In this document: positions 36,001-53,237 of the stretch, piece by piece
Layout of the letters: each line of letters starts with the position of its first letter
How positions within the stretch are numbered: the stretch's first letter is position 1
DNA from: Oculina patagonica
Taxonomy: Eukaryota
NCBI RefSeq assembly: GCF_052425735.1
Contig: NC_135766.1
Location: forward strand, 5,456,001 to 5,520,000
Direction of reading: 5' to 3'
Length of the DNA: 64,000 nt
Notes under the pieces: model-generated
The model's database searches: none
What the model was told of the DNA's origin: nothing
What the model saw: the letters and a program-made list of their open reading frames with translations, nothing else
Made by a program: the position numbers and the translations under genes

Positions 36001-39000
36001 CTTAGGTCTTGGTCATCGAAGAGAACTGTTTTGACATGAAATTCAATTCTTTCAGCTTCTACCACAAGAAATTATGAAGCCGGTAAAAGAGAGAACTTGC
36101 ATGTAGACATCACGATGTTTGAATGAAAAGAGACTAAAATGTATCTCAAAAATGGAAGTCCAACTGAAACGGGGCCAGTGGCCGATCTAGGGGAGGGGCC
36201 CAGGCAAACTTTTTTTGGATGTACACATAAAAAAGCCCCCCCCCCGCCCCAACCCTTGTTAGTTCAAGGTCTGGATCGGGGGTGATCCTTTTCGATGCCA
36301 TTTACAACCTCGTTCCCAGGGCTTTTCCCATGGTAAATAGAAGAGAGTTATCAAATGCACTGCTGGACAAAGAGTACCTTGTGATCTTGAGGAAAAACGT
36401 CACCACTGTCAAATTGTAGATAGACCAGCTGATGAACTTGCTCTCGTTGAAGGCCGACGGTGCTTTCCTGACGTTATAACACAAGTGAATTCCCCAGAAC
36501 AGGAATAATATTTCAACTACAAACAGGCAAAACATGAACATCAGTGCAAGTGAATGTAGTCTTCCTAGTTGTTAAAACAGCTTACTTAAGGCAGTTACAG
36601 TTGTAAAAAAAAAAAACTAGAAAAAAAGGTAGGGGCAGGAGCCGGGAGTAAAAGGTACGAGAAGTTGAAAGTTCATACCCCCATGGCGTCGCCCCAGCTC
36701 CTCAGGTGAATTAAGGCCTGGGTCAAGGGAGAGTTTCACGTCCCCAGCAGAGTTCAAGGAATTCGTGGAATTCGCGTGGATCTTGCGAGGATCTTGCGAG
36801 TTGCCATAGTGACTTTCGGGAACCCGCGGAGAACGCGCGTACGTTCGCGAAATAATTCCGCCATCTTGAATTATCGTTTGTCGTTGTTGACTTTGACGAT
36901 TCCAGCAATTTAAGGACTCAGAAGAAGAAGATCTTGTAGGAAGGTAAGAAAAGCTTTCTTTTGTCTCTTAATCCCATCGAAAGCATGGCAGAATATCGCT
37001 ATTTTATGCAATACAAATAGCTGGAATGTTGATCGTTTGCTATAAGCTTAAACTGTAAACTCTATCCGGGAATTGAAAACAGAGTGGAGCCATGGATTCA
37101 TAAAGCTTACACAGAATAATTTTCGTGTAATATTCTCCAAGATTTACAGTGCTTGAAATATTTCGGTTGTCTTTCTTTTAGTTTCGCTGGCGAAGGATGC
37201 CAAAGCGCGTGGAGACTCGCACAGTTGGCTATATAAGGTCAACTGAAACGTACAATGGTCATATTTTACATACTGCAAATAAGCTAATTTGCCAAACACA
37301 CTCACTGGCAATTTAGGCTAACTAGGTTCTTAATTTTTATGAAGGAAATATAGTTTTTGATTACCAGAAAAATAAACTTGATTGGTTTGGTCTTAAAAAA
37401 CAGTATTCAATCTGATTTATCAGCAACAAAACTGATTACAGAAATTATGTATATTTGGTGTCATCTCTTCAAAGTCAAACTCCTAGGTTATAAAATGTTT
37501 ATCGTAATTTAACTGTGACCCACATACCTGCTCGATCTTGCTTGACTAAACAGGCTCACTAACAGGTTCTTATATTTGGATCATATGTACATGTATTAAA
37601 GGCACCCATCGACTGATTCTCGACTTATACTGTTGTCCAACATGTTGAACAAGAATTGGTCGATACATCAGCTAACATAAACAAATAGATAAACAGAATA
37701 TATCTGAACACAACAATAATTTTGTAGAGCCACATCTTGCATTTGAAATTTTGATGTTTAAAATTTAGAGACACTGTCATTTATGACAGTCTTTACTGAC
37801 CAAATGAACACAGGCACACGCTCAGGTTTCTTGCCCAGGTACCGGCACTATACAAGCCTGACTTCTGGCCGTCATTCTGGCACTGGCTCTGTGTTAAGTG
37901 GCCAGTTCACCGAAATAAAACTCGCAAAAAATGTTTTCTCTTTTTATTTTCAAAAAGTGGCACAAAATAGATATTAACAGCAGCAATGTGTCCTATGAAG
38001 TAGTTTTTGAACATTTTGTCAATGGACTAATGAAACACAGTAAAAGCATAAACATTTCTGATGGTAACCTTATACCAGAATCACTCTTTCATAAAAGCAA
38101 TACAATAAACTTCAAAATATGTGCCATCAAAGCCATGAGTTATTGTATACTGGTCAGTAAGATATTATTGGAGCCAGCATTGCGATAATGCCTGTTGTTG
38201 TTGGTCTTCTTTCAGGGCAGCTGGTATCTAAACATTTTCCGCAATGGAAATCAGAAACTATGGAATGGCATGCTTAACACCTACGTTCAGCACAATTGTA
38301 CCAAGAGAAAAAATATCTCTGGCTTTGCTACAAGGAGAACCATAAAGTACTTCAGAAGCAATGTGAGGATAACAAATGGTGTGCTTCTTTGCAGGAGAAA
38401 TGGAGCTGTCACATGCTTTTCCAAAATCAATGATGTAGCCATTTTTGTTACTCACTTTTCACAAGAACATTATTGGACTTAAAATCACAGTGAAGAAAGC
38501 CTTTTGCATTAAATAAATATATGTGAAAGGACATCTGTCAGGTCATGTGAAATAATTAACCAGTCATTTCTTGTCAGGGAGTTTTGCACATTTTTCAGCA
38601 ATACACTGTTTTTATCACAAGATAATAGTTTTCTTATTGTTACAGAAGTGTCGTGTTCCCATTGAAAGTCCATAATAAAGGATATGGGTTCCTTTTTAAG
38701 CTGTACACCTATAATGGTAGGGATATTTTGATGTGTAAGGGACTGCATAATTTGAGCCTCCTTTGTTGTCTCCTTGGTATCATGCACAAGGGACTGTTTT
38801 TCTACAACCTGTACATTTAACTACATGTTCTGTCTAAAAAGGCAGTGACCATAGCATCCTTCACCTCGTATTATGTTGTTTCCATTGGTTGGAAGAAGTT
38901 CAGTGGGATCAATTAAATTTACATCATACTATTTGGTATGGGATGAGACTGATTTTACATTCCTGTTTTTAAGCTGGAAAATAAAGTTAAATAAATTATC

Positions 39001-42000
39001 TAATAAGAATAGTGAGAAAATATTACTAACTCCCCTGGATGGAATGTTTATCCATTAACACATTGCGGATGACGGTTTTCAGTCATAATTACAAAGTGTG
39101 CATTATGTATCTGGGTAATAAATAATTCTGACCAGAAAGCCCAAGTGCTGTGCGACAAACTCTGCTCCTGATGCTCATTCAATCCATTCATGGGTTTACT
39201 ATTTAAATGCTGCTGTTGCCAGATCTTCATCAGAAAAATCTGATATCTAGAGGGTCAGAAAAATGACAGGGACGGTCCAACATACATGTATTTTTTTTTT
39301 TAGTTGAAAATTTACACCCTCGGTATTTTTTGGGTTAAGCGATCTGTCACATATTATTTTTTTTAGGTTTGATTGAAAAATCAGTTCCGAGGTATTTAAG
39401 TCTTCTATTTTTTTGGCTAGAAACTTTTGATGCCAAGTCTTTTGGGGTGTAAAATTTCAGGCTCATGTATTTTGGGGGGGGGGGGGGTTGCAACATAAAG
39501 CTCTGTTGGACCCCCTCCCCCATCATGTATACTGCGAGTAACCCCCTGGGGCTTTGAAGAGAATAATATTATTACTTCTTGGCCCATTCCTTCAGAGTTT
39601 TTGTCACTTCCTCATTTTTTTTTTCATTGCAAATGTTGTAATTTGCCCATGTTTAGTTTCTGGGCTGTTGCTGCGGATTTGAAACCTCACCCTGTTTAGT
39701 TCCCTGTGTAGGGGAGTACCCTCTATCTAGTGCTAGTCCTGAAAATGATGAAGTGCTAACTGATGGTCTGCTAAGTTATACAGACAGGGGACAGTCTTGC
39801 AGCTATTCCATCTAAATTTGTGTCTAGAATGGGTACAGATATAATTTATAATTTATAGACCAGTGCTTATAGCTATTCAATGTGGATGTGAGGCCATGAT
39901 ACCCCAATTCATAGTCACAAAAAAATAATTCGGTTGGTCAGCGAACCGCTTTTCTATGATCCAATATTTCTTAAAGTTTTCACTTAAAACAATCTTACTT
40001 TTTTGTCCACAGCTCTGCTTTTGTTTTGCTCTGCCAATTGCTTCATTTACCATATAAAATAAAAGCGCGCCAACTCTCTCGCTCGAGAGTGTGCAGCTTT
40101 TTTCCTTTGTGCAATAATTCCTTTGGCCAACCTTTGCTTTTCAGCCCTTGATAACAGTTTTCTTTTGTTTTTCTCGCTTCTCATCCTCCGTTTTTCCTCC
40201 TACGGATCTTCACGACTAAATCGTGGCATGCATTCCTAATATTAATCGAGAGCTTTGCATTCGGATAGCGCGGGAAATTTTGGTGTTTTGGTTTGGGTAA
40301 CCGCTGTGCTCACGTTGTGCTCTTTCGGCAAAGATGCCAAATAAGGGCACGCTTTGGAGAGCCCACGGTCAAATTTCGGCGGTTTCATCTTGGTTGCTAC
40401 GAAAAAATATGGAATTGAATACGGTTTCTGATAAAGTATTACGCGGTTTTTACGGTTGAGATGCGTTTATTTCGCTTCAGAAACTATGGTATTTGATCTC
40501 ATGTAAAGAGGTAAGTTTTTATTCAATGTTTTTTTGTAGAAACCTTTTAATAATGACGCGATAAAACTTCAATACTAATGTTTTGCTTTTTACAAACGAC
40601 CTATGTAACCTCTCTCTGTTGAAACCATAAAACAAACAACTAGACTTGATTTCATTAAAGGCAGCAGTTTGAGATGGACTTATGTACAAATAACAAATTA
40701 GAAATACAATGACAAAAATCAAAAATATATAAAGTTATTTTTTAAGTTTAACACAGTCAGAACTCAGAAGTAAATAAAATATAAGCTTAACAATGGGAAA
40801 CAGAATAAATATACACAGTTCTCTTTCATCTTATATCAAAGCATCCATTTTCCATTCTTTTAACAGAGCTTTTGCATGCTTAATTTGCTTCATCAGCTCT
40901 GTTGCTTCTGGATCACTTTTTATATCTTCAGGCAATGCTAAGGTGCAATTGTGAGCCACAAAGAATTCCCTTTCCCACTCATCAAATCTTTTCTTTAATT
41001 TTCTGTGTTCACCTAAAACTTTTGATTGCACTAAAGCAAGTTTATCGCGGTAGTCATTGGCTGCCTCTTTGTCGTTTGGTTTGCTTTTGTGGCGTCTTCT
41101 GGCTTGATCTACGTTCTTAACCTCTTGCGTGGTCCCAAGTACAACTGCCACCGCTTTACAAAGTTTTGTCTGAAGTGGTGCAGCTTCTTTCTGTTGATTC
41201 TCCTGTGTTACAAAAGAAAAAAACACATAGTCACTTGCATAGCCCGTAAATCATAATTTGTTTATGTTTAAGTTCACAGATCAACAGTGATCATTACAGT
41301 TTATGGCATTATTTTCGGAGATGCTTTCTTGCTCTCTCGTCATTTTCAGCTACACAAAATTTTATAAAATATTATTTTGTAAAACATTGTAGCCAACAGT
41401 TTAAAACTATTGTTACTGGGATTTTCTTGTTGCATGACTGTTTTTGCTGTTGGTTTCACATTTGATTCTGAAAATGTATTGTCTTACATTTATTAATTGT
41501 TCTTGTTGCTTTGGAGTTGAATCGTCCCTTTTCTTTGGACAATCAGATGAACCACCTGATATGACATTGGTGTCAATTGTTCGAAGAGCTCTGTATTCCT
41601 TCCCTGCAAAAATAAGGAGTTCAATGTGTTTTAGTAAGGAAAAGTTAAAAAGTCATTCTATAGCCAAACATAAGTTTAGTAATAACAGTGCAACTCTCTA
41701 AAGTAGATGTTATTTTCAAGTTAATATGTGAGTTATCATTCCCAGGCTCTAATTTCAAGTAAGCACCCTTCATACCCATTGTTTCTGTAACAGAACAGTT
41801 AATTCCAATCATGATGTTTTTGTTTTACATGTAGTTCTAAAAGTGGCCCTACTAATGTTTAAAACATTAGAGGGGAGGGTACATCTGTAAGTTGACAACT
41901 TTAAAATTACTAATTAAGAATATAATTTAGCAAGAGTCTTTGACTTAAGGCCACAAAAAAATAGCTTACATGTACCTAAGGTTATGGCTTCATCCAGATG

Positions 42001-45000
42001 ATTTGTGGCTAAGCTTGCTTCTGGTAAGGCATCGTCTTCAAAGTCAATGGTCTGATCTCCTCCAATTAGCCTCAAGTCCACCACTAAGCCCACAGGGTTG
42101 TCTTCTTCCATGTCATCTTCCACTGCATCGCAAGGGCCTATCAGTGTTGATTGCTCGCCATTATCTTCCAATAACATGTCTTCAGCTTCAGCTTGATCTG
42201 GAGGTTTATGCAAAGCAATTAATTCATCGAACAATGGACCAGTCAAATAGTCCGTGTAGATTCGCCTTACATTGCCCTCTTCATCTTCGTCACGAACCAG
42301 GTATGTTGGAATTATCACTTCCTCCTGTAGGCATTGTTGCCAACATCCCATCAAGTGCTGCTCCTCATTCTTAAAGTTACTTGACCTGAAGTGGTGCAGT
42401 GTGGGGCCCTCACCACGGAACTCGTCTTCACCACAGGCATCAAAGAATTCAACAAAGTCCTCATCTTGAGTCCACCACACACCCTCTCCTGGCAACAAAA
42501 AATCACTTATCCTTTCCAAATGTGCCTGCCATGAACTTGAATATTTCTTGATGATGGCCTTTGGAATTTTTGTGTTTCTCTGTGGTGGAAGTGAATGCGC
42601 CAAACGTGAAACTTGTGACTGCTGCTTTTCAACACAGTTCATTGACCTTCCTAACTTTTCTTCAGCTTGCAAACGAATGAATATGTTGCTTATGATGTGG
42701 GCAGGGCGATAGCAGGATGTTGTGTTAGTGATTGACTTGACTGTGTTGAATGTTCTCTCTTCTTCCTCTGCATTTGAAGTGCGTCCTGATACAAGTCGTA
42801 ATTGAAGTGGTGCATGGGCTGTTAAGTCATGTAAGTACGTGCCATAAAACTTCCGTACAGTCTTTTTCTTAAGCTTAAAGCCAACAATCTCTCGGCACAG
42901 TGTGTGGTGATACCAGCTGGAATTGTGGTAGCGGAGTATCAGTCTTGGAGATCTGCATTTATCTTCCTTGTAAAGGATGTCTTGCATATCAACCAGTGTG
43001 TCAAGCAGGCTTTGTACCCTCTGGCTAGCTGTTCCCCGTACATACAAAGATGTTGTTATCAGAGAGCAGCGGAAATCAACAGCTCTTTTTGTTTCTTTTT
43101 TGCCAGTTGTTAGGCTTACTGCTTCCTCTAGCTTCTGTTTACATTTTTCATCCTGGATGTGTGATGGTAGCTCCGTGAGTAAGTTGTCGATGTGATGTGC
43201 AATGTCATGCATTGGTTCACATGAGAGTATTTCATAACTTCCCAGATTTAAAGATTCTAGTGAACTACTTGGGCTGTTGAAGAGGAGAGCTGGCACTCGG
43301 CTTACACCATGGAGATTTTCATCCAAGAGATCTTGTAATTCCTTTTTGTTGTTTCCCTCAAATATTCCCCTCCCTCCTAGTTCTAATTCTAGCTCTTCTC
43401 TTGCTAATGCATTGAATGGTTTAGGCTTTTGAAGGAGAGAGTTTCTCTTTCCTATAGCTCCTTGCATTACTATCTTTTGCCGGTCTTCTAAAGAAACTGC
43501 TTCGCAGCGGAAGCAGTAGTCAAGCTCACACACTCTGAGTGCATGTGCTCCACATCCAGAACAGTAGTAGTGGCCTCCTTTTTGTTGTCCACTCTCAAAT
43601 TCACGTGAGGGAGAGTCCCCATGAAAGAATCTCATGATGTCCTTAATTTCAACCCCATCTTTGGTTTTTAGATTTCTTTGAAGGTGCTGGAGACAACAAA
43701 GGCGTGTTTCCACATACGCAAGCTGCTCAACATCACAGCTCCTACACCTTGCAACGATGTAAACATGGGGCTTTTCTACTTCTGTCTGGATGTTCAGTAC
43801 CTTTCCTGAAGCTGCTTTGTACTCATCATCTGACATGTAGATGGCAGGGTCATAGAGGCAGTTGACTGTGAATATGATGTGGCCAGTATTTGCAAGTGTT
43901 GAGTGGTCATGCCATATTTGGAGGTGTCTTGTGGTGGATATTTTCTGCAATTTCTTCCTCATTTTCGTGAGTCCATCATCTGGGTTGTATTCATTTAGTC
44001 TCGTTAGTTGGGTAATGACATCCTCTCTAGACATTTCTGAGTAGTACTCATCAGGCTTAACTTTCATGAACTTTTCATGCACTTCCAGTGTTTTCCTTCT
44101 TATTTCTTCAAGAGGCTGTTTTCTTCCTTGAACAGTGAAAGTTGTTGTGTGAATCTTGCCATCTGCATCAATGATCAGCTTTTCATACTAAAATAAGAAA
44201 AATAGTAGTATCCGTATGGTTAATAAAGCAGAACACCACAACAACTCAACCATAGTGCTAACATAACACCTTATTGCATTGCATGACTGCCTTGTTCTTT
44301 ATTTACACAAATTATGCACTCTATCAGAATATTTGTTTTTACTAAAGCCAATCTCATTTTATTTTAAGAAGTACTACAAGAAACTCCATTGATTGTCGGA
44401 CATTTTTTTGCAGAGTATTATTGTGAAGTTCTACTTGACAAGACTTCAATCACTGTAGACCTTGAGCCAGATTTGAGAGCTTATCCCTCTCAAAGGTAAT
44501 GACATATGTATTTGCATTTATTTTTGTCCACGAGTGGAATTTATTATTTTATTTATTCCTTCATTCCACTGTGTGGTCATTACTAGGGACAGTAATGTGA
44601 TGATTTATTTATCAATGACTTATCTTTTCGAAGAAATGAAATGAATTTAATCTTATTCATTCACATGCTCACCTCTCTAGGAACTATGAGCTCTCCAACT
44701 GTGAATTCCCCTTGTTGAATTTTGAGCTTGAGCTTTTGCTTTAAGCTGTCATTGGTTTCTGGTGTGGGGAGGGAAATTTCACCACCAAGTCCTTTCAGCT
44801 TCTTTCTTCGTGGTTGTCGCTCATTTTCTGAGGGACGGTTAAACCGGTGCAGGTTGACACCCTGAGAAATGAGCCATTCCTGAGCGATTTGGCCACCATT
44901 TTTAGCAATCTGCCCCTTCTTGTTTTTGATTTGATATCTTCTTGCTAGCTCAGACCAGTTGACCTTCGTTTCATCTCCATATCCTTCCACTTCATTCTTT

Positions 45001-48000
45001 AAGCCATCCTTGTCCCATGTCATTGCCTCAAAATTACCAGCATGACGTTTCCTTTTAACGACAGGTGTTTCATCAAGCTCTGAACTTGTCTCCTTTCTTT
45101 TCATTGCAGCGTGCTTTCCTTCAAATGACGAATCAAGACGCTCTCGTTGCCTTGCAGCATATGATTGTCGCCCACCAAGACACCTGAAAGATCAATGACA
45201 GATTTTACTTTTAACTTTAGAATTATGTTCATGTGCATTTCCCTGTTCTTGTTGAAGTCAGTGCCCATTCAGGGCACGTATCATATTCATGTCGCAATTT
45301 GCATATAGTGTGAGTGTTAATAACTATTCTTTTGTAATTCAAGAAAGGCGCACAGAAGCATACAGTGATAGTGATTGACAGGTGATACACGTAGACCTAA
45401 GAATGATGGCAAAAATAAAGATTTTTTCTCCATGTTAGAATGCTAATTATTGGCTTCATATATTTATCAATTTTACTTCCCCCTCCCCTCGCCTAAACCT
45501 GATAATTACCTCAAGAGGGAAGTCTTCTCCCATTCGTCTTCCACTTTCTGTTTGAAACTTCTGTAAGAAGCTCTCCTTTCTCTCTTGGCTTCTGTTGGAC
45601 TCTTCCTCTTTTGAAGCTGGAGCTCTGGGATTTTGGTTAACACCTCGCCAAATGATGTACTACACGCTTTCTGGAAGGTAGCATCTATTTTATCATACAG
45701 AGCCCTCGCAATTTGTTTGGCTTCCCCTGCCTTGCATGGCTTGATCTTAGCCTCTTTGCCAGCAATAAAAAATGGATTCTTCTTTGCCATTCCCACAAAC
45801 TGATTTGACTTCACGGGGAGTAATGCCTGAATTTGAGGATAGCGATGATAGCACCCTTTGCAGTTTGCAAACGAATGCTCAGATTTTAACGTGGGCGCCA
45901 TTTTTTCCCAGTTTTGAATAGTGAATGTTTCTAAGTACTTTTCCTTCTCGTCCTTTTTTCTTGGGTTCCAGCTGCTAAACAAATCTCGGAGAGCTGGTAT
46001 TTTCTTCTGAAATTTCAAAAAGTCAATGGCAAATGCCTCTGATCTCTCCTTGAAAACTTCGTTGTACCTCTTGAAGCACTCCTGCATTGACCGCGCTCTG
46101 AATTTCGCTGTTCCCTCTCCATTTTCCCGGCGAAATGTTTTCGATGCCTCTCTCGCTATTTCTAAAGCAGCCACTCGGGCAAAGCCGCAACTTGTTGGGC
46201 AAATAAGGGTAGCAACCATTTTGACTTTGAAGGAAAATCGTTTGCTAAGCCAATTCGTACTAAGTACTGCGTTTGAAGTTGGCGCTCTTTTAACTGAGCG
46301 GTACATTATATGCCCACATAAATTATGAAAAGATCCTAGATCAGATTTCGATGGTTTATTATTTCACCATTAGAGAGGTTTAGAGAAAAAATACATTTGA
46401 CATCGGCAAACTGAATGCAGCTTAATGTCATTATACCTTTATTTGACTCCGAGCAATGTCTGAAACAGCCACAAATACTGTTAGTTGTTCACGTTACTTA
46501 AAGAAATTGTTTTTAAAATACCCCAAAAACTACACCTCGTAAATTTAGACCCTACTTTGGTAAAAATAGTACGTTTCTTCCGTTGATTTCTTCAAAAGAA
46601 GTAGCATCTCTCCTTCGTCCGCCATCTTGCTTGCCTTCCAAATTGCCATAGCAACAGAGACATCCGCTGTTTCTAAAACCCGTAGGTTCACAAAAAAAAT
46701 GGCGCCCAAAAACAAACCGAAGTACGACTCGCGAACCTCTGCTGCAGGAGCATTTTATTCGCACCTTAGCTGCGTGTTTGTCACAGAATATTTACATGGA
46801 ACCTCAGTCAACATGTTGTTGACTGGAAAGGCTGCATTGAAGCACTAGATAAAAATCAGTTAGGAAGAGATTTTCCACCTTCTATCAGAAAGTGCCTAAA
46901 TTTCTTGTAGCACACTAAACCGAAAGCTTAGACTTCCTTGCCAGTAAGTTTAAGACTTCTCATCCCATCAACTACTCTCCTCAAGCGTTTGGCATCTTGA
47001 GGCAAGCACAAAGTGCTCTTGCAAGGCAAGCATATTAAATTGGCGGGAAAATATACGTTAAAGTGTCACGTGACAGTTCTCTACTGACAGTTTGTGTTGG
47101 AAAAAAAAGGAAAAAAAATATCTAAGTATTTAAGCCCACCATGAGCCATATACACCCATTTTTAATTTTTAAATAATTTTTTTTATTATTTTATCCATTT
47201 TCAACCCTGACCCAGGCCTTAACGTAGCTGAGCTCCCTTCCCTATCCTCGTTCCCTTGATGAGAGTGGACTATACATAAAAGGGACTGGTTGGATTTGTC
47301 GGCTCTTGTTCTCACATAATTCGGACTTAACGTTCTTCTCTTAACGTACTGTAGCTGCAGTCAGTAACATCAAGACTGACAGACTTACAAATCAAGATTG
47401 CGTGATCCCACCAGTCGATAGAACACTCATCAAACTTGAGATCTCCTGGCATCTTCAACTCTATCACGTGACTGGGTCCCGCTAGTGACCAGGCCAACAA
47501 GTAGACTATGTACAGCGCCATAATGGGAGCAAGGCGCTGGAGAAGATGGCGGTCAGTGAGTTTGATCTTCTGAGCAGATTTCACGCGGAAAATCACGGAA
47601 ATCCTACAAAAGAAAATCAGTGATTATTCAGTTAGCTTACGTTTTAACAAAACAATATTGCAGGATACACCTTCTTGCGACAATAAGTTTCTTGACTCTT
47701 TGAGCCTGTGCTTGACAAATGACAGGAGTCCATTAGGAAATGAGGATGACTAACAATGGCAAAGATGGAAATAGATTCAAATAAACGAAAAAAAGTAAAC
47801 GTTACTTTTAAGACTTCAGCCCAGACTTGCAAAAAGGAAACAATAAACTTAAAGTTATTATAACACGGGACTCCGTTAAAACATTGAGTTAACGAGCCCT
47901 GTACTTGTCATAGCTTTTTATAAATAGCAGTCATGCAACCTCTGACGGAAAGCCCCCCAAAAGAAACTAAGCTTGACTTCCATGTCTCGCTACCCATGTT

Positions 48001-51000
48001 TTCGCCTGTCACGCAATCTCAAAGAAACTCACCTCCACGTTTTTAGGAGAAGAGAGGTGAAACCAAGCCCAAATCCAATATGGCGAAACCACAGCCGAAC
48101 GATACATAATGAGTTCTGCGGCTCGGGGTACTCCACAAGAATCTACATTGAAAAAAATAGTAAGGTTATTCTAATTAAGGAGAATTTCTACTGTAGTTAA
48201 ACCTCAGGGATGAAAATCAACAAGACTGGCGAATGCAAAATACCTGACAGTCAACTCAACCCACATTTTACGGTAAACGTTAACCGAGGAACTATAACCA
48301 TACGCATCTGTATTAGTGTTTCTGTTTAAAAAAACACGTGACTGAACTTACCTCACAGTACTGCAAGATACATCCCGCTAATATGATGATAAGAAAATGA
48401 GGACTTGCTGTCTTCACCACCTGTTAGCACGAGGAAAACACGTGGTCTTATCACTCGGTTGTTACGCAGTGTTAACTACTAAGTAGGGGATCTGGCCACC
48501 GAACCACCGTACGTATGATAGTATAGGTTATTGAAATATTCAAGTCTGCATATATTCAGTCAAACCACACACGGTAAAGTTTTTACATGTAACAGAATGG
48601 GTGCACTGGATTCCCTATGTGTTCTTCAAACTCGTCGCCAAAGCCCGCAAGATCATGAGCTCTGGCCATACCCAATTTTTCCACAAATCTGATTGGCTGG
48701 TAAGGCAAAATAAAAGGCGTAAGTTCAGAAAATTCGTGACTTGCTGGAAGTCGTGAACTTGGTGCTGAGCAAATAGATTGGGGAGTAGCTCTCGCAAGAT
48801 CTCACATGAATGGCTCGCTGCCATTCGAGAGAACAATAGAACAAACAACAGGAACAATGTCTTTAGCCCCCAAAACAATAGCAACTGCTACACTAGAGGA
48901 CCTGTGGGATTACAAGCCTACGAGGGCTGCTACACTACTGACCAAAGAATAGCAGGCAGTGGGGTCGAGATTGTCTTATGAAGCCTGACTCTCTCACCTT
49001 CAAATCTCGAAAGTAGACAATAAATACAATTATCCCAATGGCAGCTAGAATGGTGACAACAGTCAACCCCATCAGCGCTTTCCTTAGCGGCCAGCTCAAC
49101 GTCACAATACACGGCGAATCATCCACGCACTTGTCACAACCAGGCTGGCACTGGATGCATTGATAGGAATCTGGGTTCGAGTGATAGCTGTTACTCTGGT
49201 CAGCGGCCGCCGCCTCGATGACGGAGCCGTTGAAATATTTATCATGAGTTGTGACGTTGGGAAAGAAGTAGCCAGGCTTACAGGCGCACCTGTACGAACC
49301 TGCTCTAAAACCCAGTCCACTCACAAACTCGCACTGCAATAAAATAAAACAATATCCCGTTGATAAGACATACCAGTTAAAGCGTAAGTTTATTTCGTTT
49401 TAGCATGACTTACAAAGCACAGAAAAAATTCTTGCACAAAAAAAGGTGAAGGAAAAAATAACACGTACAACAAGCCCAAGAAACAAAAAAAACTAAAAGT
49501 AAATAAAAAACCTTGCACACAACTAAAAGACAGAAAAAAGTTCGAGCTCAGAAAATTTGCCAAATTTCCCGTCCCTAAGTAAACCATGCACTTATCTGGT
49601 CAAAACGTTGACAAAACGAAACTGGCTGTCGTTTAAGGGATTTGTAACCCTGTCCGTTTCTTCCCCATCCTGGATCTTACCTGCGTGGTTTCATTTTTAC
49701 AGCGATGAGTGCCGGCGAAAATTTCGAACTGGAACTGGCCCCCAGATTCCTTGTCACATTGGTTTATGTCCACATTCGTGAGTGCAATGTCAATTGTGGT
49801 CATGCCCCTGAAAAAAGAAAATAAAAAAGACAAACGAACTCGTAAGAATGTCTGCAAACGAATGCAGTGTTTTTTCTCAGTGTTTGCGTGACGGTCACAC
49901 ACCGCCTTGTCGTTCGTAACACGTGTTAGTATTTTCCAATCTGAACTATCCTTGTTCCTATTCGGTTTATTACCTTTGAAGTTTGTCTACCTCAGTTAAC
50001 TTTATTCGAGTTTCGAGTAAAGATATCTTAGTCCGGGTGGGGGGGGGGGGGGGGGCGGGAGTGGTGGGGTCTCTTATACGAGAGGGGCGGGGATGCTCGT
50101 CGTCTCGCTTAGGGGTGTAAATGTCGGATTTTTGGTCTCACTTAGGGTGTTCTGGGCAAAACGCCATTATTTTTTGCCGTCAAAGACTCGTTTAGGGTTG
50201 CACAAGAAAAATCTACAGAAAACAAATCCTATTTTTTTAGTATTTTGAAGCAGCTTGAGTCAAGCCCAGATTGTTCTCTTTCAGGGGTTCTTTTTAAAAC
50301 GTGGGACGAGCATCCCAGCCCCTTCAAATTGGAGTCTCCCCGGGATTTAAGTACATTTCGAAAAATGCTTTAATGAAACGCAGCTAGCTAGACGCAGACC
50401 TGTGTGTCTATTCATTAACAAATCAAATTCTTATAACTGGTTCAATATGGAATGTGTAAAAACCAGTTTGGAGAATTCATGTTAAAACCAGGATGAAATA
50501 CATATCATATAGCTTCTTTTCTTGTTCTAATAATTCCTTTTCTGAGTAGGTTGAGGGCCCCAACAGGTTTTTCGGGATCTGGGATTTTCAGTGTGCTTAT
50601 TTAAAGGCCGGGATCTAGGATTTTGGAGGAAAACGGAAGCGAGATTCGGGATGCTCTAGTATGAAGTAAAAAGGGTTAGATTATTACTGGCAAAAACCAA
50701 CAACAGTATTTTAGACGTGCATAATTAATCCAGGAAATCTCTAAATAAAGCAAATTTTGGAAACGTCCCAATTACAATTTCAATTAATAATTTGATAATT
50801 TTAAACAGCCGCAAAGCTGCGGAATTTCGTGTCAACTTACATGAAGGAGATTGGTCCATTCTTGTCCCAGTTGCCCAGTATAGGAGAGGTGTAAGTGATG
50901 ACCCATGCTCTGACCGCGGTACATTCATAATAGGGCCGACTCCACAAGCCGTCAATGGACTCCACAAACTCATGCGTCAGTTTCAGTGGCTGTGGTGCAT

Positions 51001-51658
51001 AAGAGCCATTTCTCCGTGGATAAAAGTAAGTTGTCCGTATCGGGAAAGGTCGGTCGTGAGATTTATTCCGCATCAGTCTAACAAACGCCTCGTGAAGATA
51101 GCTCCAGGACGCAGACAAATCTGTTACTTTAATAAACGAGTCGTTTGAGTTCCGGTACGCATACGGCGCATAAAATGAATTGTTTACAAAGCTGTTGTTG
51201 TCGAAAATGATCGCTGATCCCACTATAAGTGGGTCGTTTTCTAGATTGTTTCTGACGATAGCGTAAAGGACTTCTTCGTGCGACTTCAACACCGGTTCCC
51301 CGGAAATATTCCACGCCTTCGCGGAGCCGGTCGGAAGCAAATCGGAGATTAAATTAGCTGTTCGGATGGCGAGGTTTGCTTGGGCTGTGTAAACGCTGTT
51401 TTCGTATTTAAAGAACAGAAGTTTCAAGCTTCTCTCCGCCAGCATGGTTTTGCAGTCCACAGTGCCATTGTGTACTTCTTCGATAGCTTTCAATGCCTGT
51501 CGCGCCGTCATCGTGAAAACCCCTGCACGATCGTCTACCACAGGTGGACGGTCCGGATTCTTGACAGATGGATCGCTTGTAAAATGCAACTCATTCCCTA
51601 CCGCACTTCCATGAACACGCGGAAATACGACAAGCGTACAAACCAAAACGAAGAGCAT
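19797..51658 (-). CDS. GPR158/GPR179-like class C GPCR (764 aa)
   Basis: Ten phase-consistent exons total 2295 nt: 51658-50841, 49807-49681, 49333-48998, 48420-48352, 48142-48033, 47603-47389, 36516-36378, 21225-21120, 20927-20787, 20030-19797. It has a signal peptide, a Cache-like region (WSRPYYEC...W.ITYTSP), a Cys-rich region (VDINQCD, FAGTHRC, GLGFRAGSYRCACKPGYFFP), 7TM motifs (LLKTWRI, VRKAPSAFNESKFI, FVPK) and a coiled-coil tail (ENEDLKEEIRKLY). Confidence 0.93.
21363..21510. mobile_element. Short palindromic MITE-like repeat
   Basis: GGTTGTTCAAAAGGTGCATAAC ... GTTATCCACCCTTCGAACAAC form inverted ends. A partial copy lies near 32130-32290. Confidence 0.6.
28230..28568 (-). CDS. Small nested ORF (112 aa) with N-terminal MGC myristoylation/palmitoylation-type motif, inside GPCR intron 7
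   Basis: Starts MGCLPSRRR in ataATGG context. Good acceptor at 28596-28597 and upstream donor at 29401. Contains a helical segment (EETLKLLQEIGELK). No family recognised. Confidence 0.6.
   Translation of the reverse strand: MGCLPSRRRDEESSPKENAPAKKSASGRRSNNTEETIKQDKSSLAPTIQMVNEETLKLLQEIGELKVFQTASNADHKKHIDMHHDIILALENPTKANNAVTSLSSEASSNVI
33143..33356. repeat. Local tandem duplication (about 118 bp period)
   Basis: GCAAAAATAGATTTTCATTTCCTGCAGAGAAGATAAAA...CAGTCAAAGTTCAAAAG occurs twice. Confidence 0.8.
38154..40229 (-). pseudogene. Decayed protein kinase gene carried by the transposon
   Basis: Exon 40229-39999 (MPRFSREDP*EEKRR..., ends at gtaag). Kinase exon 38973-38154 has GEGCYGHC, VVEK, KEAQIM, HCDFKSNNVLV, IIDFGKA, HIASE, DIFSLG and CLDTSCPERRP in order, broken by several stops and frameshifts. 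Confidence 0.85.
40831..46219 (-). CDS. Intact 5-exon transposase (1306 aa) with a RAG1/Transib/CMC-type catalytic core
   Basis: Exons 46219-45510, 45183-44673, 44187-41976, 41603-41488 and 41202-40831 total 3921 nt with no internal stop. Motifs: IWHDH, FFHGD, YYCSGC, CEPMHD, YLHDLTAHAP, SNAEEEER. Lies inside the TIR-bounded element. Confidence 0.8.
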
Positions 51659-53237
51659 GGTTATGCAGTGATATATGCTGCGTTTAGCGTGAGGAAGTGT
51701 TTTGTTTCTGTATACTAAAGCACATACGCCTCTAGGCAAAATGCTAATCTACTGTGCGAACTTAAACAGTACGTCGAGGTGCTAATGGAATTTACACTGG
51801 AAAAATAATACCTTTTCAATGCGAGCGACGGAACAGAAGGAGTCCAAAACAAACAGCGAGCCCGAATGTACACGGCGGTTGACAGATTAACCCAGGATAC
51901 TTGTGTAGTTAATTACAAATCGCATTGTCATCAAATAAAATTAATCCAAGCGCATGATGCACGCCATTGTACCCTGGACGGGTTAAAATTTGTCTTGGGC
52001 GTAAGCAATAAACCAGAGTAAACAAACGGGAGAAGGTTTTGCAAAAAGTCTTTTGAAATTTATATGGTTGTTTTTAATAACAAAATAAGCGCATTGCAAA
52101 CTGTTCTAATTAGAAACAGTCATAAATGTGTCAACTTTGGTTAAAAGCGGGTTACTTTTTGACCAGGTCATTTGATGTGAGGACGACAATCCTGTAATAC
52201 TATGCCCGTTTACAAAGCCAACGCACTGTATCTGTTTGACAGCGTATGTTACAAAATCTGAATGTCATTGTGACGGGAAAATAGAGAAGTATATCATAAT
52301 GAAACAGACAAAATTAAAAACAGAAATTGACACTTGCAGTCAAACCTGATTGTTTGATCAGGATTAACTCACTTCCCACTGTTAAATTTAAAACTGAATT
52401 ATTGAAAATGCTTTTATTCTAGCACGGAATCAATAAAACGAACTAAATGAATTGTGGCAGATTCTAATAAGAGGCCTATGGAAATTTAAACATCGAGATA
52501 TAAGAGGAGATTGCATGTGCTTTTGGTTGACAGCATTGCAATAAAAGGCGAATAAAAAAAAACGTATTTATGCAAATAGTGGAGGCATATGCCAATTTGT
52601 TTCAGGCACGGGCGTAGATGCAGTTTATTATATCTAAACGTTATTCAAGACAGTTCAATGAAAAAAAAAGGAAAAGAGTTACTTAGTACTTGACTCTTCC
52701 ACAGGGTAGTACACTCCCCACGGAAACATTTCATTGTGGGGTGTTTGGTGCAGGGGGAAAAGGAGGGGGGGAAGTATTGCCAATATTTTGTACCTAAACA
52801 AGTACAGTCGACTCCCGATAACTCAAACCTTCAAGGGAAATCGAAAAAGGTTCGTGTTATCGGGAGTTCGAGTTATCGGAAGTTGAGAACAAATGACAGA
52901 GAATAAGGAATGCGCACTAACGCTTCTCAACTAACCTCATACTATTGATTATCCTTGAAAGTTTTCTAAGGTTGGAAAGAATCGGTATCAACCGCCACTA
53001 CCGTGTTTCACTCCTCCTTTGCGGGGAGGAGTGAACCATAATTGCCCTTAAAAACGACTGCGCGGGAGGGCACGAATTCCCCAGAAGATACTGGCGAAAA
53101 TTTGTGACCCCCACCTGACAAAATTCATTCGTAAGCCCCCTTCCTTCCCTCCTCTCCCCTACTCTGACACAGACGCTTTCACTACTAAGTATCATCTCTC
53201 CCTAGAGAACAGGGTTTCGTCGTCCGCCTCGCATTTA

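Follow-up and report, generated by a model that had tools for sequence, protein, structure and literature searches.

What kind of transposon joins a RAG1-like transposase to ends that carry TTAA? This question is raised by a 64,000-nucleotide stretch of the Oculina patagonica genome (NCBI RefSeq assembly GCF_052425735.1, contig NC_135766.1, positions 5,456,001 to 5,520,000), which is referred to here as a whole as the window. A preliminary description placed an intact transposon at 36711-47222 of the window, with GG termini, a TTAA duplication and a transposase of the RAG1/Transib/CMC type, and proposed that a relative of the RAG ancestor had switched its end and target recognition. In this study, the locus was compared with a genome of 529 Mb and with related families; copies and families are named by contig (C1, C4 and so on) or by locus (L066 and so on). 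Our results indicate that positions 36701-47232 are very probably a genuine 10.5-kb cut-and-paste DNA transposon of the CMCT group (CACTA/Mirage/Chapaev/Transib) with a RAG1-like enzyme.

The ends of the element were defined by comparison of its copies. Homology of the window element to the copies on C1, C4 and C5 stops at 36698-36701 and 47232-47243, and the flanks differ beyond these points. The letters on which the preliminary description relied are present, with TTAA followed by GGCCTGGGTCAAGG at 36711-36728 and CCCTGACCCAGGCC followed by TTAA at 47205-47222, and together they form the 13/14-bp inverted repeat that it reported. However, they mark neither the boundary of the element nor its target duplication. 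Outside each TTAA, 10 more base pairs are common to every other copy (left CTCAGGTGAA-TTAA-GGCC, right GGCC-TTAA-CGTAGCTGAG) before the sequences diverge, and because the homology among copies runs 10 bp past each TTAA, the TTAA is a part of the inverted repeat. The outer 10 bp of both window ends are also partly inverted repeats of each other. The terminal repeat is therefore 25 bp long (20 of 25 positions matching), and the boundaries of the element lie 10 bp further out than the GG termini proposed earlier.

The same organization recurs in the related families. Their inverted repeats are 23-25 bp long, start with 5'-CTCAG and carry TTAAGG at repeat positions 11-16, and the true termini are 5'-CTCA..TGAG-3' in all families examined. 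TTAA occupies positions 11-14 in five families and also at the single end seen in L084. The terminal pattern CTCARG-N4-TTAAKG-N2-TGGSTC gave 66 matches in the genome against none for a reversed control, and two matches in the window against none expected. Target duplications were read at nine insertions over five families, and eight of these have 2-bp duplications of varied sequence (CA, CT, AA, AA, CA, TT, GG and TT). Because TTAA is internal to the repeat and the insertions are flanked by these varied duplications, the family does not target TTAA. The genome-wide collection of copies, which had been suggested as a way of confirming TTAA duplications, thus revealed other boundaries, 2-bp duplications and no duplication of TTAA. 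The window copy is the exception among the nine insertions, since CTC stands on both of its sides, which represents a duplication of 3 bp or else an irregularity of one base. Its left flank contains a 55-bp dispersed repeat (36631-36685) that is 82-85% identical at at least 17 places in the genome and stops 15 bp short of the insertion, so that a paralogous empty-site comparison through this repeat did not settle the duplication of the window copy. The junction before insertion would read ...CCCAGCTC-CCTTCC... (or one base more), without TTAA.

The core of the transposase lies in a 722-residue open reading frame (ORF) at 41914-44082 on the minus strand. In the numbering of this ORF, the motifs are D59 (IWHD), D156 (FFHGD), C174/C177, H292 (EPMH), H418/H423 (YLHDLTAHAP) and E439-E442, and the numbering given in the preliminary description is exact. 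These residues are kept in 43 to 45 of 45 aligned homologues, and C174xxC177, M291-H292 and H418x4H423, which fall after the second D and before the E, are each conserved in at least 44 of them. The C174/C177 and H418/H423 pairs presumably correspond to zinc ligands in RAG1. An AlphaFold2 model of the core, built from the alignment of homologues, is confident over residues 1-625 (predicted local distance difference test score, pLDDT, 85; predicted template modelling score, pTM, 0.84). The model has the topology of an RNase H-like DDE enzyme, in which D59 lies on the first strand (51-63), D156 comes after the fourth strand (145-155) and E439/E442 start a helix (439-455). About 280 mostly helical residues are inserted between the DDE strands and the E helix, and this insertion domain carries C174xxC177, H292 and H418x4H423. 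When the model was compared with solved structures by Foldseek, RAG1 structures filled ranks 1-41, with E values from 8e-8 to 1e-4 and about 510-530 columns aligned, and HzTransib came next (probability 0.99). VIA-align, which is independent of Foldseek, gave RAG1 a Z score of 13.8 over 382 residues (model 1-482 on RAG1 588-1024), followed by the amphioxus RAG-like transposase (12.1), P element (9.8), HzTransib (8.6), ISCth4 (7.2) and Hermes (4.7); integrase and RNase H-fold structures were also among its matches. No piggyBac structure appeared among the matches of either program. The RAG1/Transib/CMC-type DDE transposase of the preliminary description is thus borne out by the conserved D-D-C(2)C-[M/L]H-H(4)H-E layout together with the fold matches, and the structural comparison with RAG1 and HzTransib that it recommended yielded an RNase H-like DDE fold with RAG1 as the best match. 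Like that description, we saw no RAG2-like ORF and no heptamer resembling a recombination signal sequence.

By direct sequence search, the core had no match in Pfam or the PDB, and a profile of the 45 homologues found the SAP motif alone in the PDB. Pfam searches with all 45 homologues detected no transposase model; SAP was the sole recurrent match (passed by 11 of the 45), and the other rows were weak and mostly from single members. This SAP-like DNA-binding motif is inserted in the insertion domain at core residues ~226-260 (window 43300-43410). The RAG1 core model PF12940 matched neither the window ORFs nor the 45 homologues. Relatives of the core are numerous and annotated as 'hypothetical', and they are cnidarian wherever the source is named (Actinostola, Paramuricea); a 99%-identical fragment is labelled Oculina patagonica. 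When 1.84 billion cluster representatives were searched with a profile, 6,319 clusters were retrieved at E<=0.001, of which 1,429 were also found at E<=1e-30. Among AlphaFold DB clusters, uncharacterised relatives occur in Nematostella, Branchiostoma, Crassostrea and Mytilus, and distantly in Naegleria.

We assign the window element to the known CMCT kind as a divergent lineage, unusual and possibly an undescribed branch. The CMCT clade of Kojima 2025 widens CMC with Plavaka, ESTA and Lanisha (PMC12730594). It is characterized by C(2)C and H(3-4)H with five conserved residues (two C and three H), by duplications of 2-5 bp and mostly by CA..TG termini; HHpred gives RAG1 for its divergent members, and the duplications are 2 bp in PlavakaA and 2 or 3 bp in PlavakaB (PMC12730594). 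The element was filed in this clade because its motifs, its fold and a duplication length within 2-5 bp are those of the clade. Several observations weigh against this assignment. The termini depart from the CA..TG rule, being CTCA..TGAG with an internal TTAAGG. Comparison by hhalign with 40 animal Transposase_21 proteins gave a probability of 0.2%, and a 4-sequence version was also not significant; in the top-scoring local alignment, the [M/L]H motif of one side lies opposite that of the other. Neither Pfam nor profile-profile comparison provided a sequence-level tie to any named superfamily member, and a scan of the genome with PF12940 had no match, with a control that was also silent. The proposed equivalence of the D/D/E residues and zinc ligands to those of RAG1 is based on their spacing, on the secondary structure and on the match in overall fold. 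Finally, the 2-bp rule gives TC before and CT after the window copy, and its flanks match only as a 3-bp CTC. The Transposase_21 and DUF1258 Pfam models had no match at E<=1 in any of the 45 homologues. At least 29 Transposase_21 (EnSpm/CACTA-type) matches were found in the same genome (for example L070-L075), several with open frames of ~930 residues, so that a conventional CMC family is present there in abundance as a second one.

Further open blocks flank the 722-residue ORF on the minus strand, two of them upstream (45506-46306 and 44661-45104) and one downstream (40831-41226). Because intronless paralogues and long homologues join them, blocks A, B, C and D are assigned to one predicted protein, a transposase of ~1,200 residues encoded in four exons (Table 1). 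The four-exon model has 1,198 codons, and every donor and acceptor is in phase. An uninterrupted spliced frame, as described earlier, therefore exists, but its reported length of 1306 codons was not reproduced. Exon C can also be read through over a longer open stretch. Under the four-exon model, the acidic tail of the 722-residue ORF (residue 605 onward) would be intronic. The donor of exon C coincides with the end of an RNA contig and with the end of homology; a strong-looking donor at ~41976 (TTAG/GTACAT) was set aside in its favor, as no good exon D acceptor fits it. Exon A has homology to ORFs located upstream in L066, L076, L077, L004 and L005 and to residues 6-216 of P0065, and its four conserved cysteine and histidine residues are a possible zinc site. 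A model of this domain is helical (pLDDT 75) and had no match among solved structures at E<=0.001. In L005, an intronless paralogue, the exon B part runs on into the core without a break, and exon D has homology to the C-terminal ends of L004, L005 and P0025.

A polyA metatranscriptome of a related organism contained contigs on 42271-44189, 44673-45137 and 45588-46240. These contigs begin or end at three predicted exon borders (one stops exactly at 44673, the border of exon B), and the introns are nearly empty. Since contigs cannot prove splice joints, we regard them as supportive evidence only. In two other runs, contigs running through the introns represent DNA or unspliced RNA. RNA-library contigs also show plus-strand GT..AG joints at 42298-42778, 42830-44416 and 44493-45108, antisense to the transposase. 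The short plus-strand 'exons' at 42778-42830 and 44412-44493 share the acceptor 44412. The joints have sides of only 28-82 letters and are weak evidence; they may stem from antisense or read-through transcription, or from deletion derivatives.

The window copy also carries the remnants of a kinase gene (Table 1). In L066 and L076, an open kinase exon lies inside the repeats and downstream of the transposase, with a basic exon before it (Pkinase E 1e-26 and 6e-28, respectively); in L076 the counterpart of the basic exon stands just upstream of the kinase exon. The two kinases are 44% identical to each other and possess HCDLKxNN, DFG and APE motifs, with a GxGxFG loop in L076, and among solved structures they are closest to FAK1, RIPK1 and CTR1. 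The kinase is intact and apparently active in L066 and L076, and it is decayed in the window copy. A search inside the L077 and L085 elements yielded no kinase, and the gene thus marks a subclade and not the whole lineage. Kinase fragments at L077:537-1223 lie outside the 6.7-kb element, which has no kinase of its own, at ~6 kb upstream of it, and may be the remains of a neighbouring element. At a guess, the kinase would modulate the host response or the transposase itself. In the literature searched, no pairing of such transposons with a protein kinase was found, and the only kinase was the alpha-kinase of fungal IS3EU (PMC12730594).

The reading of the preliminary description deserves consideration, because TTAA abuts a 13/14-bp inverted repeat on both sides and GG..CC fits the RR..YY rule of Kolobok (PMC9587614). 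It holds that the element ends in GGCC...GGCC and inserts into and duplicates TTAA, so that a RAG1-like transposase would work with piggyBac/Kolobok-type targeting. However, the outer 10 bp are identical in copies at unrelated loci and belong to the longer inverted repeat, and TTAA keeps its place within the repeat in five families while varied 2-bp duplications flank the CTCAG ends. An implausible recurrence of 24 specific target bases in unrelated contexts would be needed, and we consider this reading virtually untenable; the inferred switch of end and target recognition is refuted along with TTAA targeting. Hardly more credible is the idea that the element is a Kolobok or another hAT/P/Kolobok member with a core that only resembles RAG1. 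Kolobok elements have TTAA duplications, RR..YY termini, a C/DxxH signature with a zinc finger downstream and, in some lineages, extra genes (PMC9587614). The window element shares with them a TTAA beside purine-purine/pyrimidine-pyrimidine bases and an extra gene, its D293-x3-H297 is loosely like C/DxxH and is the only candidate for the signature, with the CxxC upstream, beside the second D, and its structure agrees fairly well with that of the P element transposase (Z 9.8). On the other hand, its TTAA is inside the repeat and is not the duplication, and its true termini are CT..AG. The motif layout, with C(2)C 18 residues past the second D and H(4)H 16-19 residues before the E, is that of CMC/Transib and not that of Kolobok, and the Z score of RAG1 (13.8) is well above those of P element and Hermes (4.7).

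It is quite possible, although we lean against it, that an element with this same mechanism is already catalogued in Repbase/Dfam as EnSpm/CACTA, Mirage or Chapaev, kinase-bearing forms included. The family is very large, as its 6,319 clusters indicate, and it is present in the well-studied Nematostella, Branchiostoma, Crassostrea and Mytilus. Mirage-type elements make 2-bp duplications, which match those of the element. Animal CACTA elements with 2-bp duplications are also known (PMC6004678). In addition, language-model neighbours of the transposase carry Transposase_21, Plavaka or DUF1258, including a DUF1258-bearing nematode cluster with a feature score of 0.89; these are leads only. Nevertheless, every named relative carries the label 'hypothetical' or 'uncharacterized', Pfam has no transposase model that matches, and the kinase pairing was absent from the literature searched, apart from the IS3EU case. 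EnSpm/CACTA and Chapaev have invariable CAC..GTG termini and duplications of 3 bp (CACTA) or 3-4 bp (Chapaev) (PMC4079192), and the element differs from these hallmarks in its CTCAG termini and 2-bp duplications. It is also possible, if rather doubtful, that the window copy is a dead and immobile relic with a frame that is open by chance. Only two copies of the window family, those in the window and on C1, keep both ends; the repeats of the window copy differ at 5 of 25 positions, its kinase is broken, and the remaining copies are truncated (on C4 and C5) or form tandem arrays of the left end. However, both two-ended copies are 99% identical at different loci, and the C1 copy, which is flanked by a TT duplication, has a 3.1-kb internal deletion of a type typical of recent gap repair. 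The four exons are open with splice sites in phase, and the RNA contigs follow the exons.

It is plausible from these sequence features that the window element, read here as a CMCT transposon, is still mobile. The two copies that occupy different loci with 99% identity, the C1 one being derived by internal deletion, point to recent movement. The open transposase frame is in line with this, as is a sister family, L066-L069, with perfect repeats, and exon-shaped RNA contigs are present as well. The transposase of this sister family is identical on at least nine contigs, and the four copies that were read are 99.95% alike; it looks recently active. In the proposed mechanism, the transposase would bind the 23-25 bp inverted repeats with their 5'-CTCAG start and TTAAGG at positions 11-16, where TTAAGG may be a protein-binding site. 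Cleavage by the transposase would then take place at the CTCAG ends, which would be joined to the target with a 2-bp stagger. Hairpins on the flanking DNA are assumed by analogy with RAG1 and Transib.

Table 1. Features of the window element (positions in the window) and its related families (element lengths).
Feature	Position or length	Strand	Basis and details
Whole transposon	36701..47232 (10,532 bp)	- (genes read on minus strand)	Homology with C1, C4 and C5 copies
Left terminal inverted repeat (3' end relative to genes)	36701..36725	+	CTCAGGTGAATTAAGGCCTGGGTCA; copy comparison, terminal pattern
Right terminal inverted repeat	47208..47232	-	Reverse complement CTCAGCTACGTTAAGGCCTGGGTCA; matches left repeat 20/25
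Internal TTAA, left repeat positions 11-14	36711..36714		TTAA at same place in L066, L076, L077, L085, L084
Internal TTAA, right repeat positions 11-14	47219..47222		Copy and family comparison
Flanking CTC, possible left copy of 3-bp target duplication	36698..36700		Flank reading
Flanking CTC, possible right copy	47233..47235		Flank reading
Predicted transposase exon A	45510..46306	-	Donor AG/GTAATT; N-terminal helical region; conserved C40, H144, C149, C152
Predicted transposase exon B	44673..45183	-	Acceptor TTTCAG/G, donor GAG/GTGAGC; in phase with A and C
Predicted transposase exon C, RAG1-like catalytic core and SAP-like insert	42271..44187	-	Donor AAT/GTAAGG at 42271
Predicted transposase exon D, conserved C-terminal helical tail	40834..41202	-	Acceptor CACAG/GAG, phase 0 with 42271 donor; stop codon 40831-40833
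Remnant of basic first exon of kinase gene	39987..40229	-	53% identical to L066:14292-14537
Kinase domain remnant, at least 4 frame pieces	38160..38787	-	Pfam Pkinase on two ORFs (38258-38787); piecewise tblastn to L066 kinase
Family L066-L069	12,246 bp		60% transposase identity; repeat starts CTCAGGTACATTAAGG, perfect 23 bp; duplications CA, CT, AA, AA
Family L076	8,797 bp		48% transposase identity; repeat starts CTCAGGTGTATTAATG; duplication CA
Family L077	6,707 bp		35% transposase identity; repeat starts CTCAAGCATGTTAAGG; duplication TT
Family L085 (named assembly)	12,036 bp		Repeat starts CTCAGATCCGTTAAGT; duplication GG
Family L084 (marine contig)			One end visible; repeat starts CTCAGCATAGTTAAGG

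Fragments of the lineage are also found apart from whole elements. The matches to the terminal pattern include a dispersed CTCAAGTGAATTAAGGAATGGGTC family (~22 copies) and, at C9:21277219-21277905, a pair of the lineage's terminal motifs, inverted relative to each other and spaced at 687 bp. The pair is probably a miniature non-autonomous derivative, similar to a miniature inverted-repeat transposable element. Head-to-tail arrays with a period of ~1,720-1,750 bp occupy C1350:1-38,900 and C4:39,031,000-39,053,000 (L033-L060). Their unit consists of the left ~500 bp of the transposon (CTCAGG inward) and ~1.2 kb of unrelated flank, and the arrays are a satellite-like amplification of one transposon/flank junction, not strings of whole elements.

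The transposon is surrounded by exon-like ORFs of a host gene on the minus strand (36302-36541, 47327-47596, 48935-49339 and 50837-51739). They contain transmembrane stretches and a cysteine-rich module, with a resemblance to family C (GPR158-like) receptors noted by eye only. The element is located within the intron between the ORFs at 36302-36541 and 47327-47596, in the same orientation as the receptor-like gene.

Three features make this transposon unusual: its CTCA..TGAG termini, the lack of a Pfam transposase match despite 6,319 clusters, and a kinase gene that is apparently active, is carried by three related families and is decayed in the window copy. Tentatively, these elements may form an undescribed RAG1-fold lineage distributed over several animal phyla and separate from EnSpm and Transib, with CTCAG-N5-TTAAGG ends and 2-bp duplications, in which a cnidarian subclade keeps a catalytically competent eukaryotic kinase. 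If this is true, it would be the first pairing of a eukaryotic protein kinase with a DDE transposon. The reason for a transposon to keep a protein kinase is a question in its own right. With this family, the group that gave rise to RAG1 gains a well-resolved branch, and annotators can search with the CTCAG/TTAAGG terminal signature of the family. The notion that a relative of RAG1 changed over to TTAA targeting is incorrect and should be dropped.

Among known systems, RAG1 and Transib share the order of motifs with the element. The distance from the second D to CxxC is 19 residues in RAG1 and 18 here, and that from H(4)H to the E is 20 residues in RAG1 and 16-19 here. In contrast, RAG1/Transib have a 5-bp duplication and CAC-heptamer-like ends, where the element has 2 bp and CTCAG. 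Unlike RAG, it has no RAG2-like partner, and its transposase possesses a SAP-like insert and a different N-terminal region. The likeness to CMC/CMCT elements lies in the signature of two C and three H after the second D and before the E, the 2-bp duplication, and RAG1 as the structural match. With piggyBac the element has just TTAA near its ends in common; it differs in having no TTAA duplication and no piggyBac-type fold match. Fungal IS3EU is similarly a DDE transposon that carries a kinase gene (PMC12730594), but it belongs to another transposase superfamily and its kinase has the alpha-kinase fold, whereas the kinase described here is a canonical eukaryotic protein kinase with the Gly loop, HCDLKxNN, DFG and APE.

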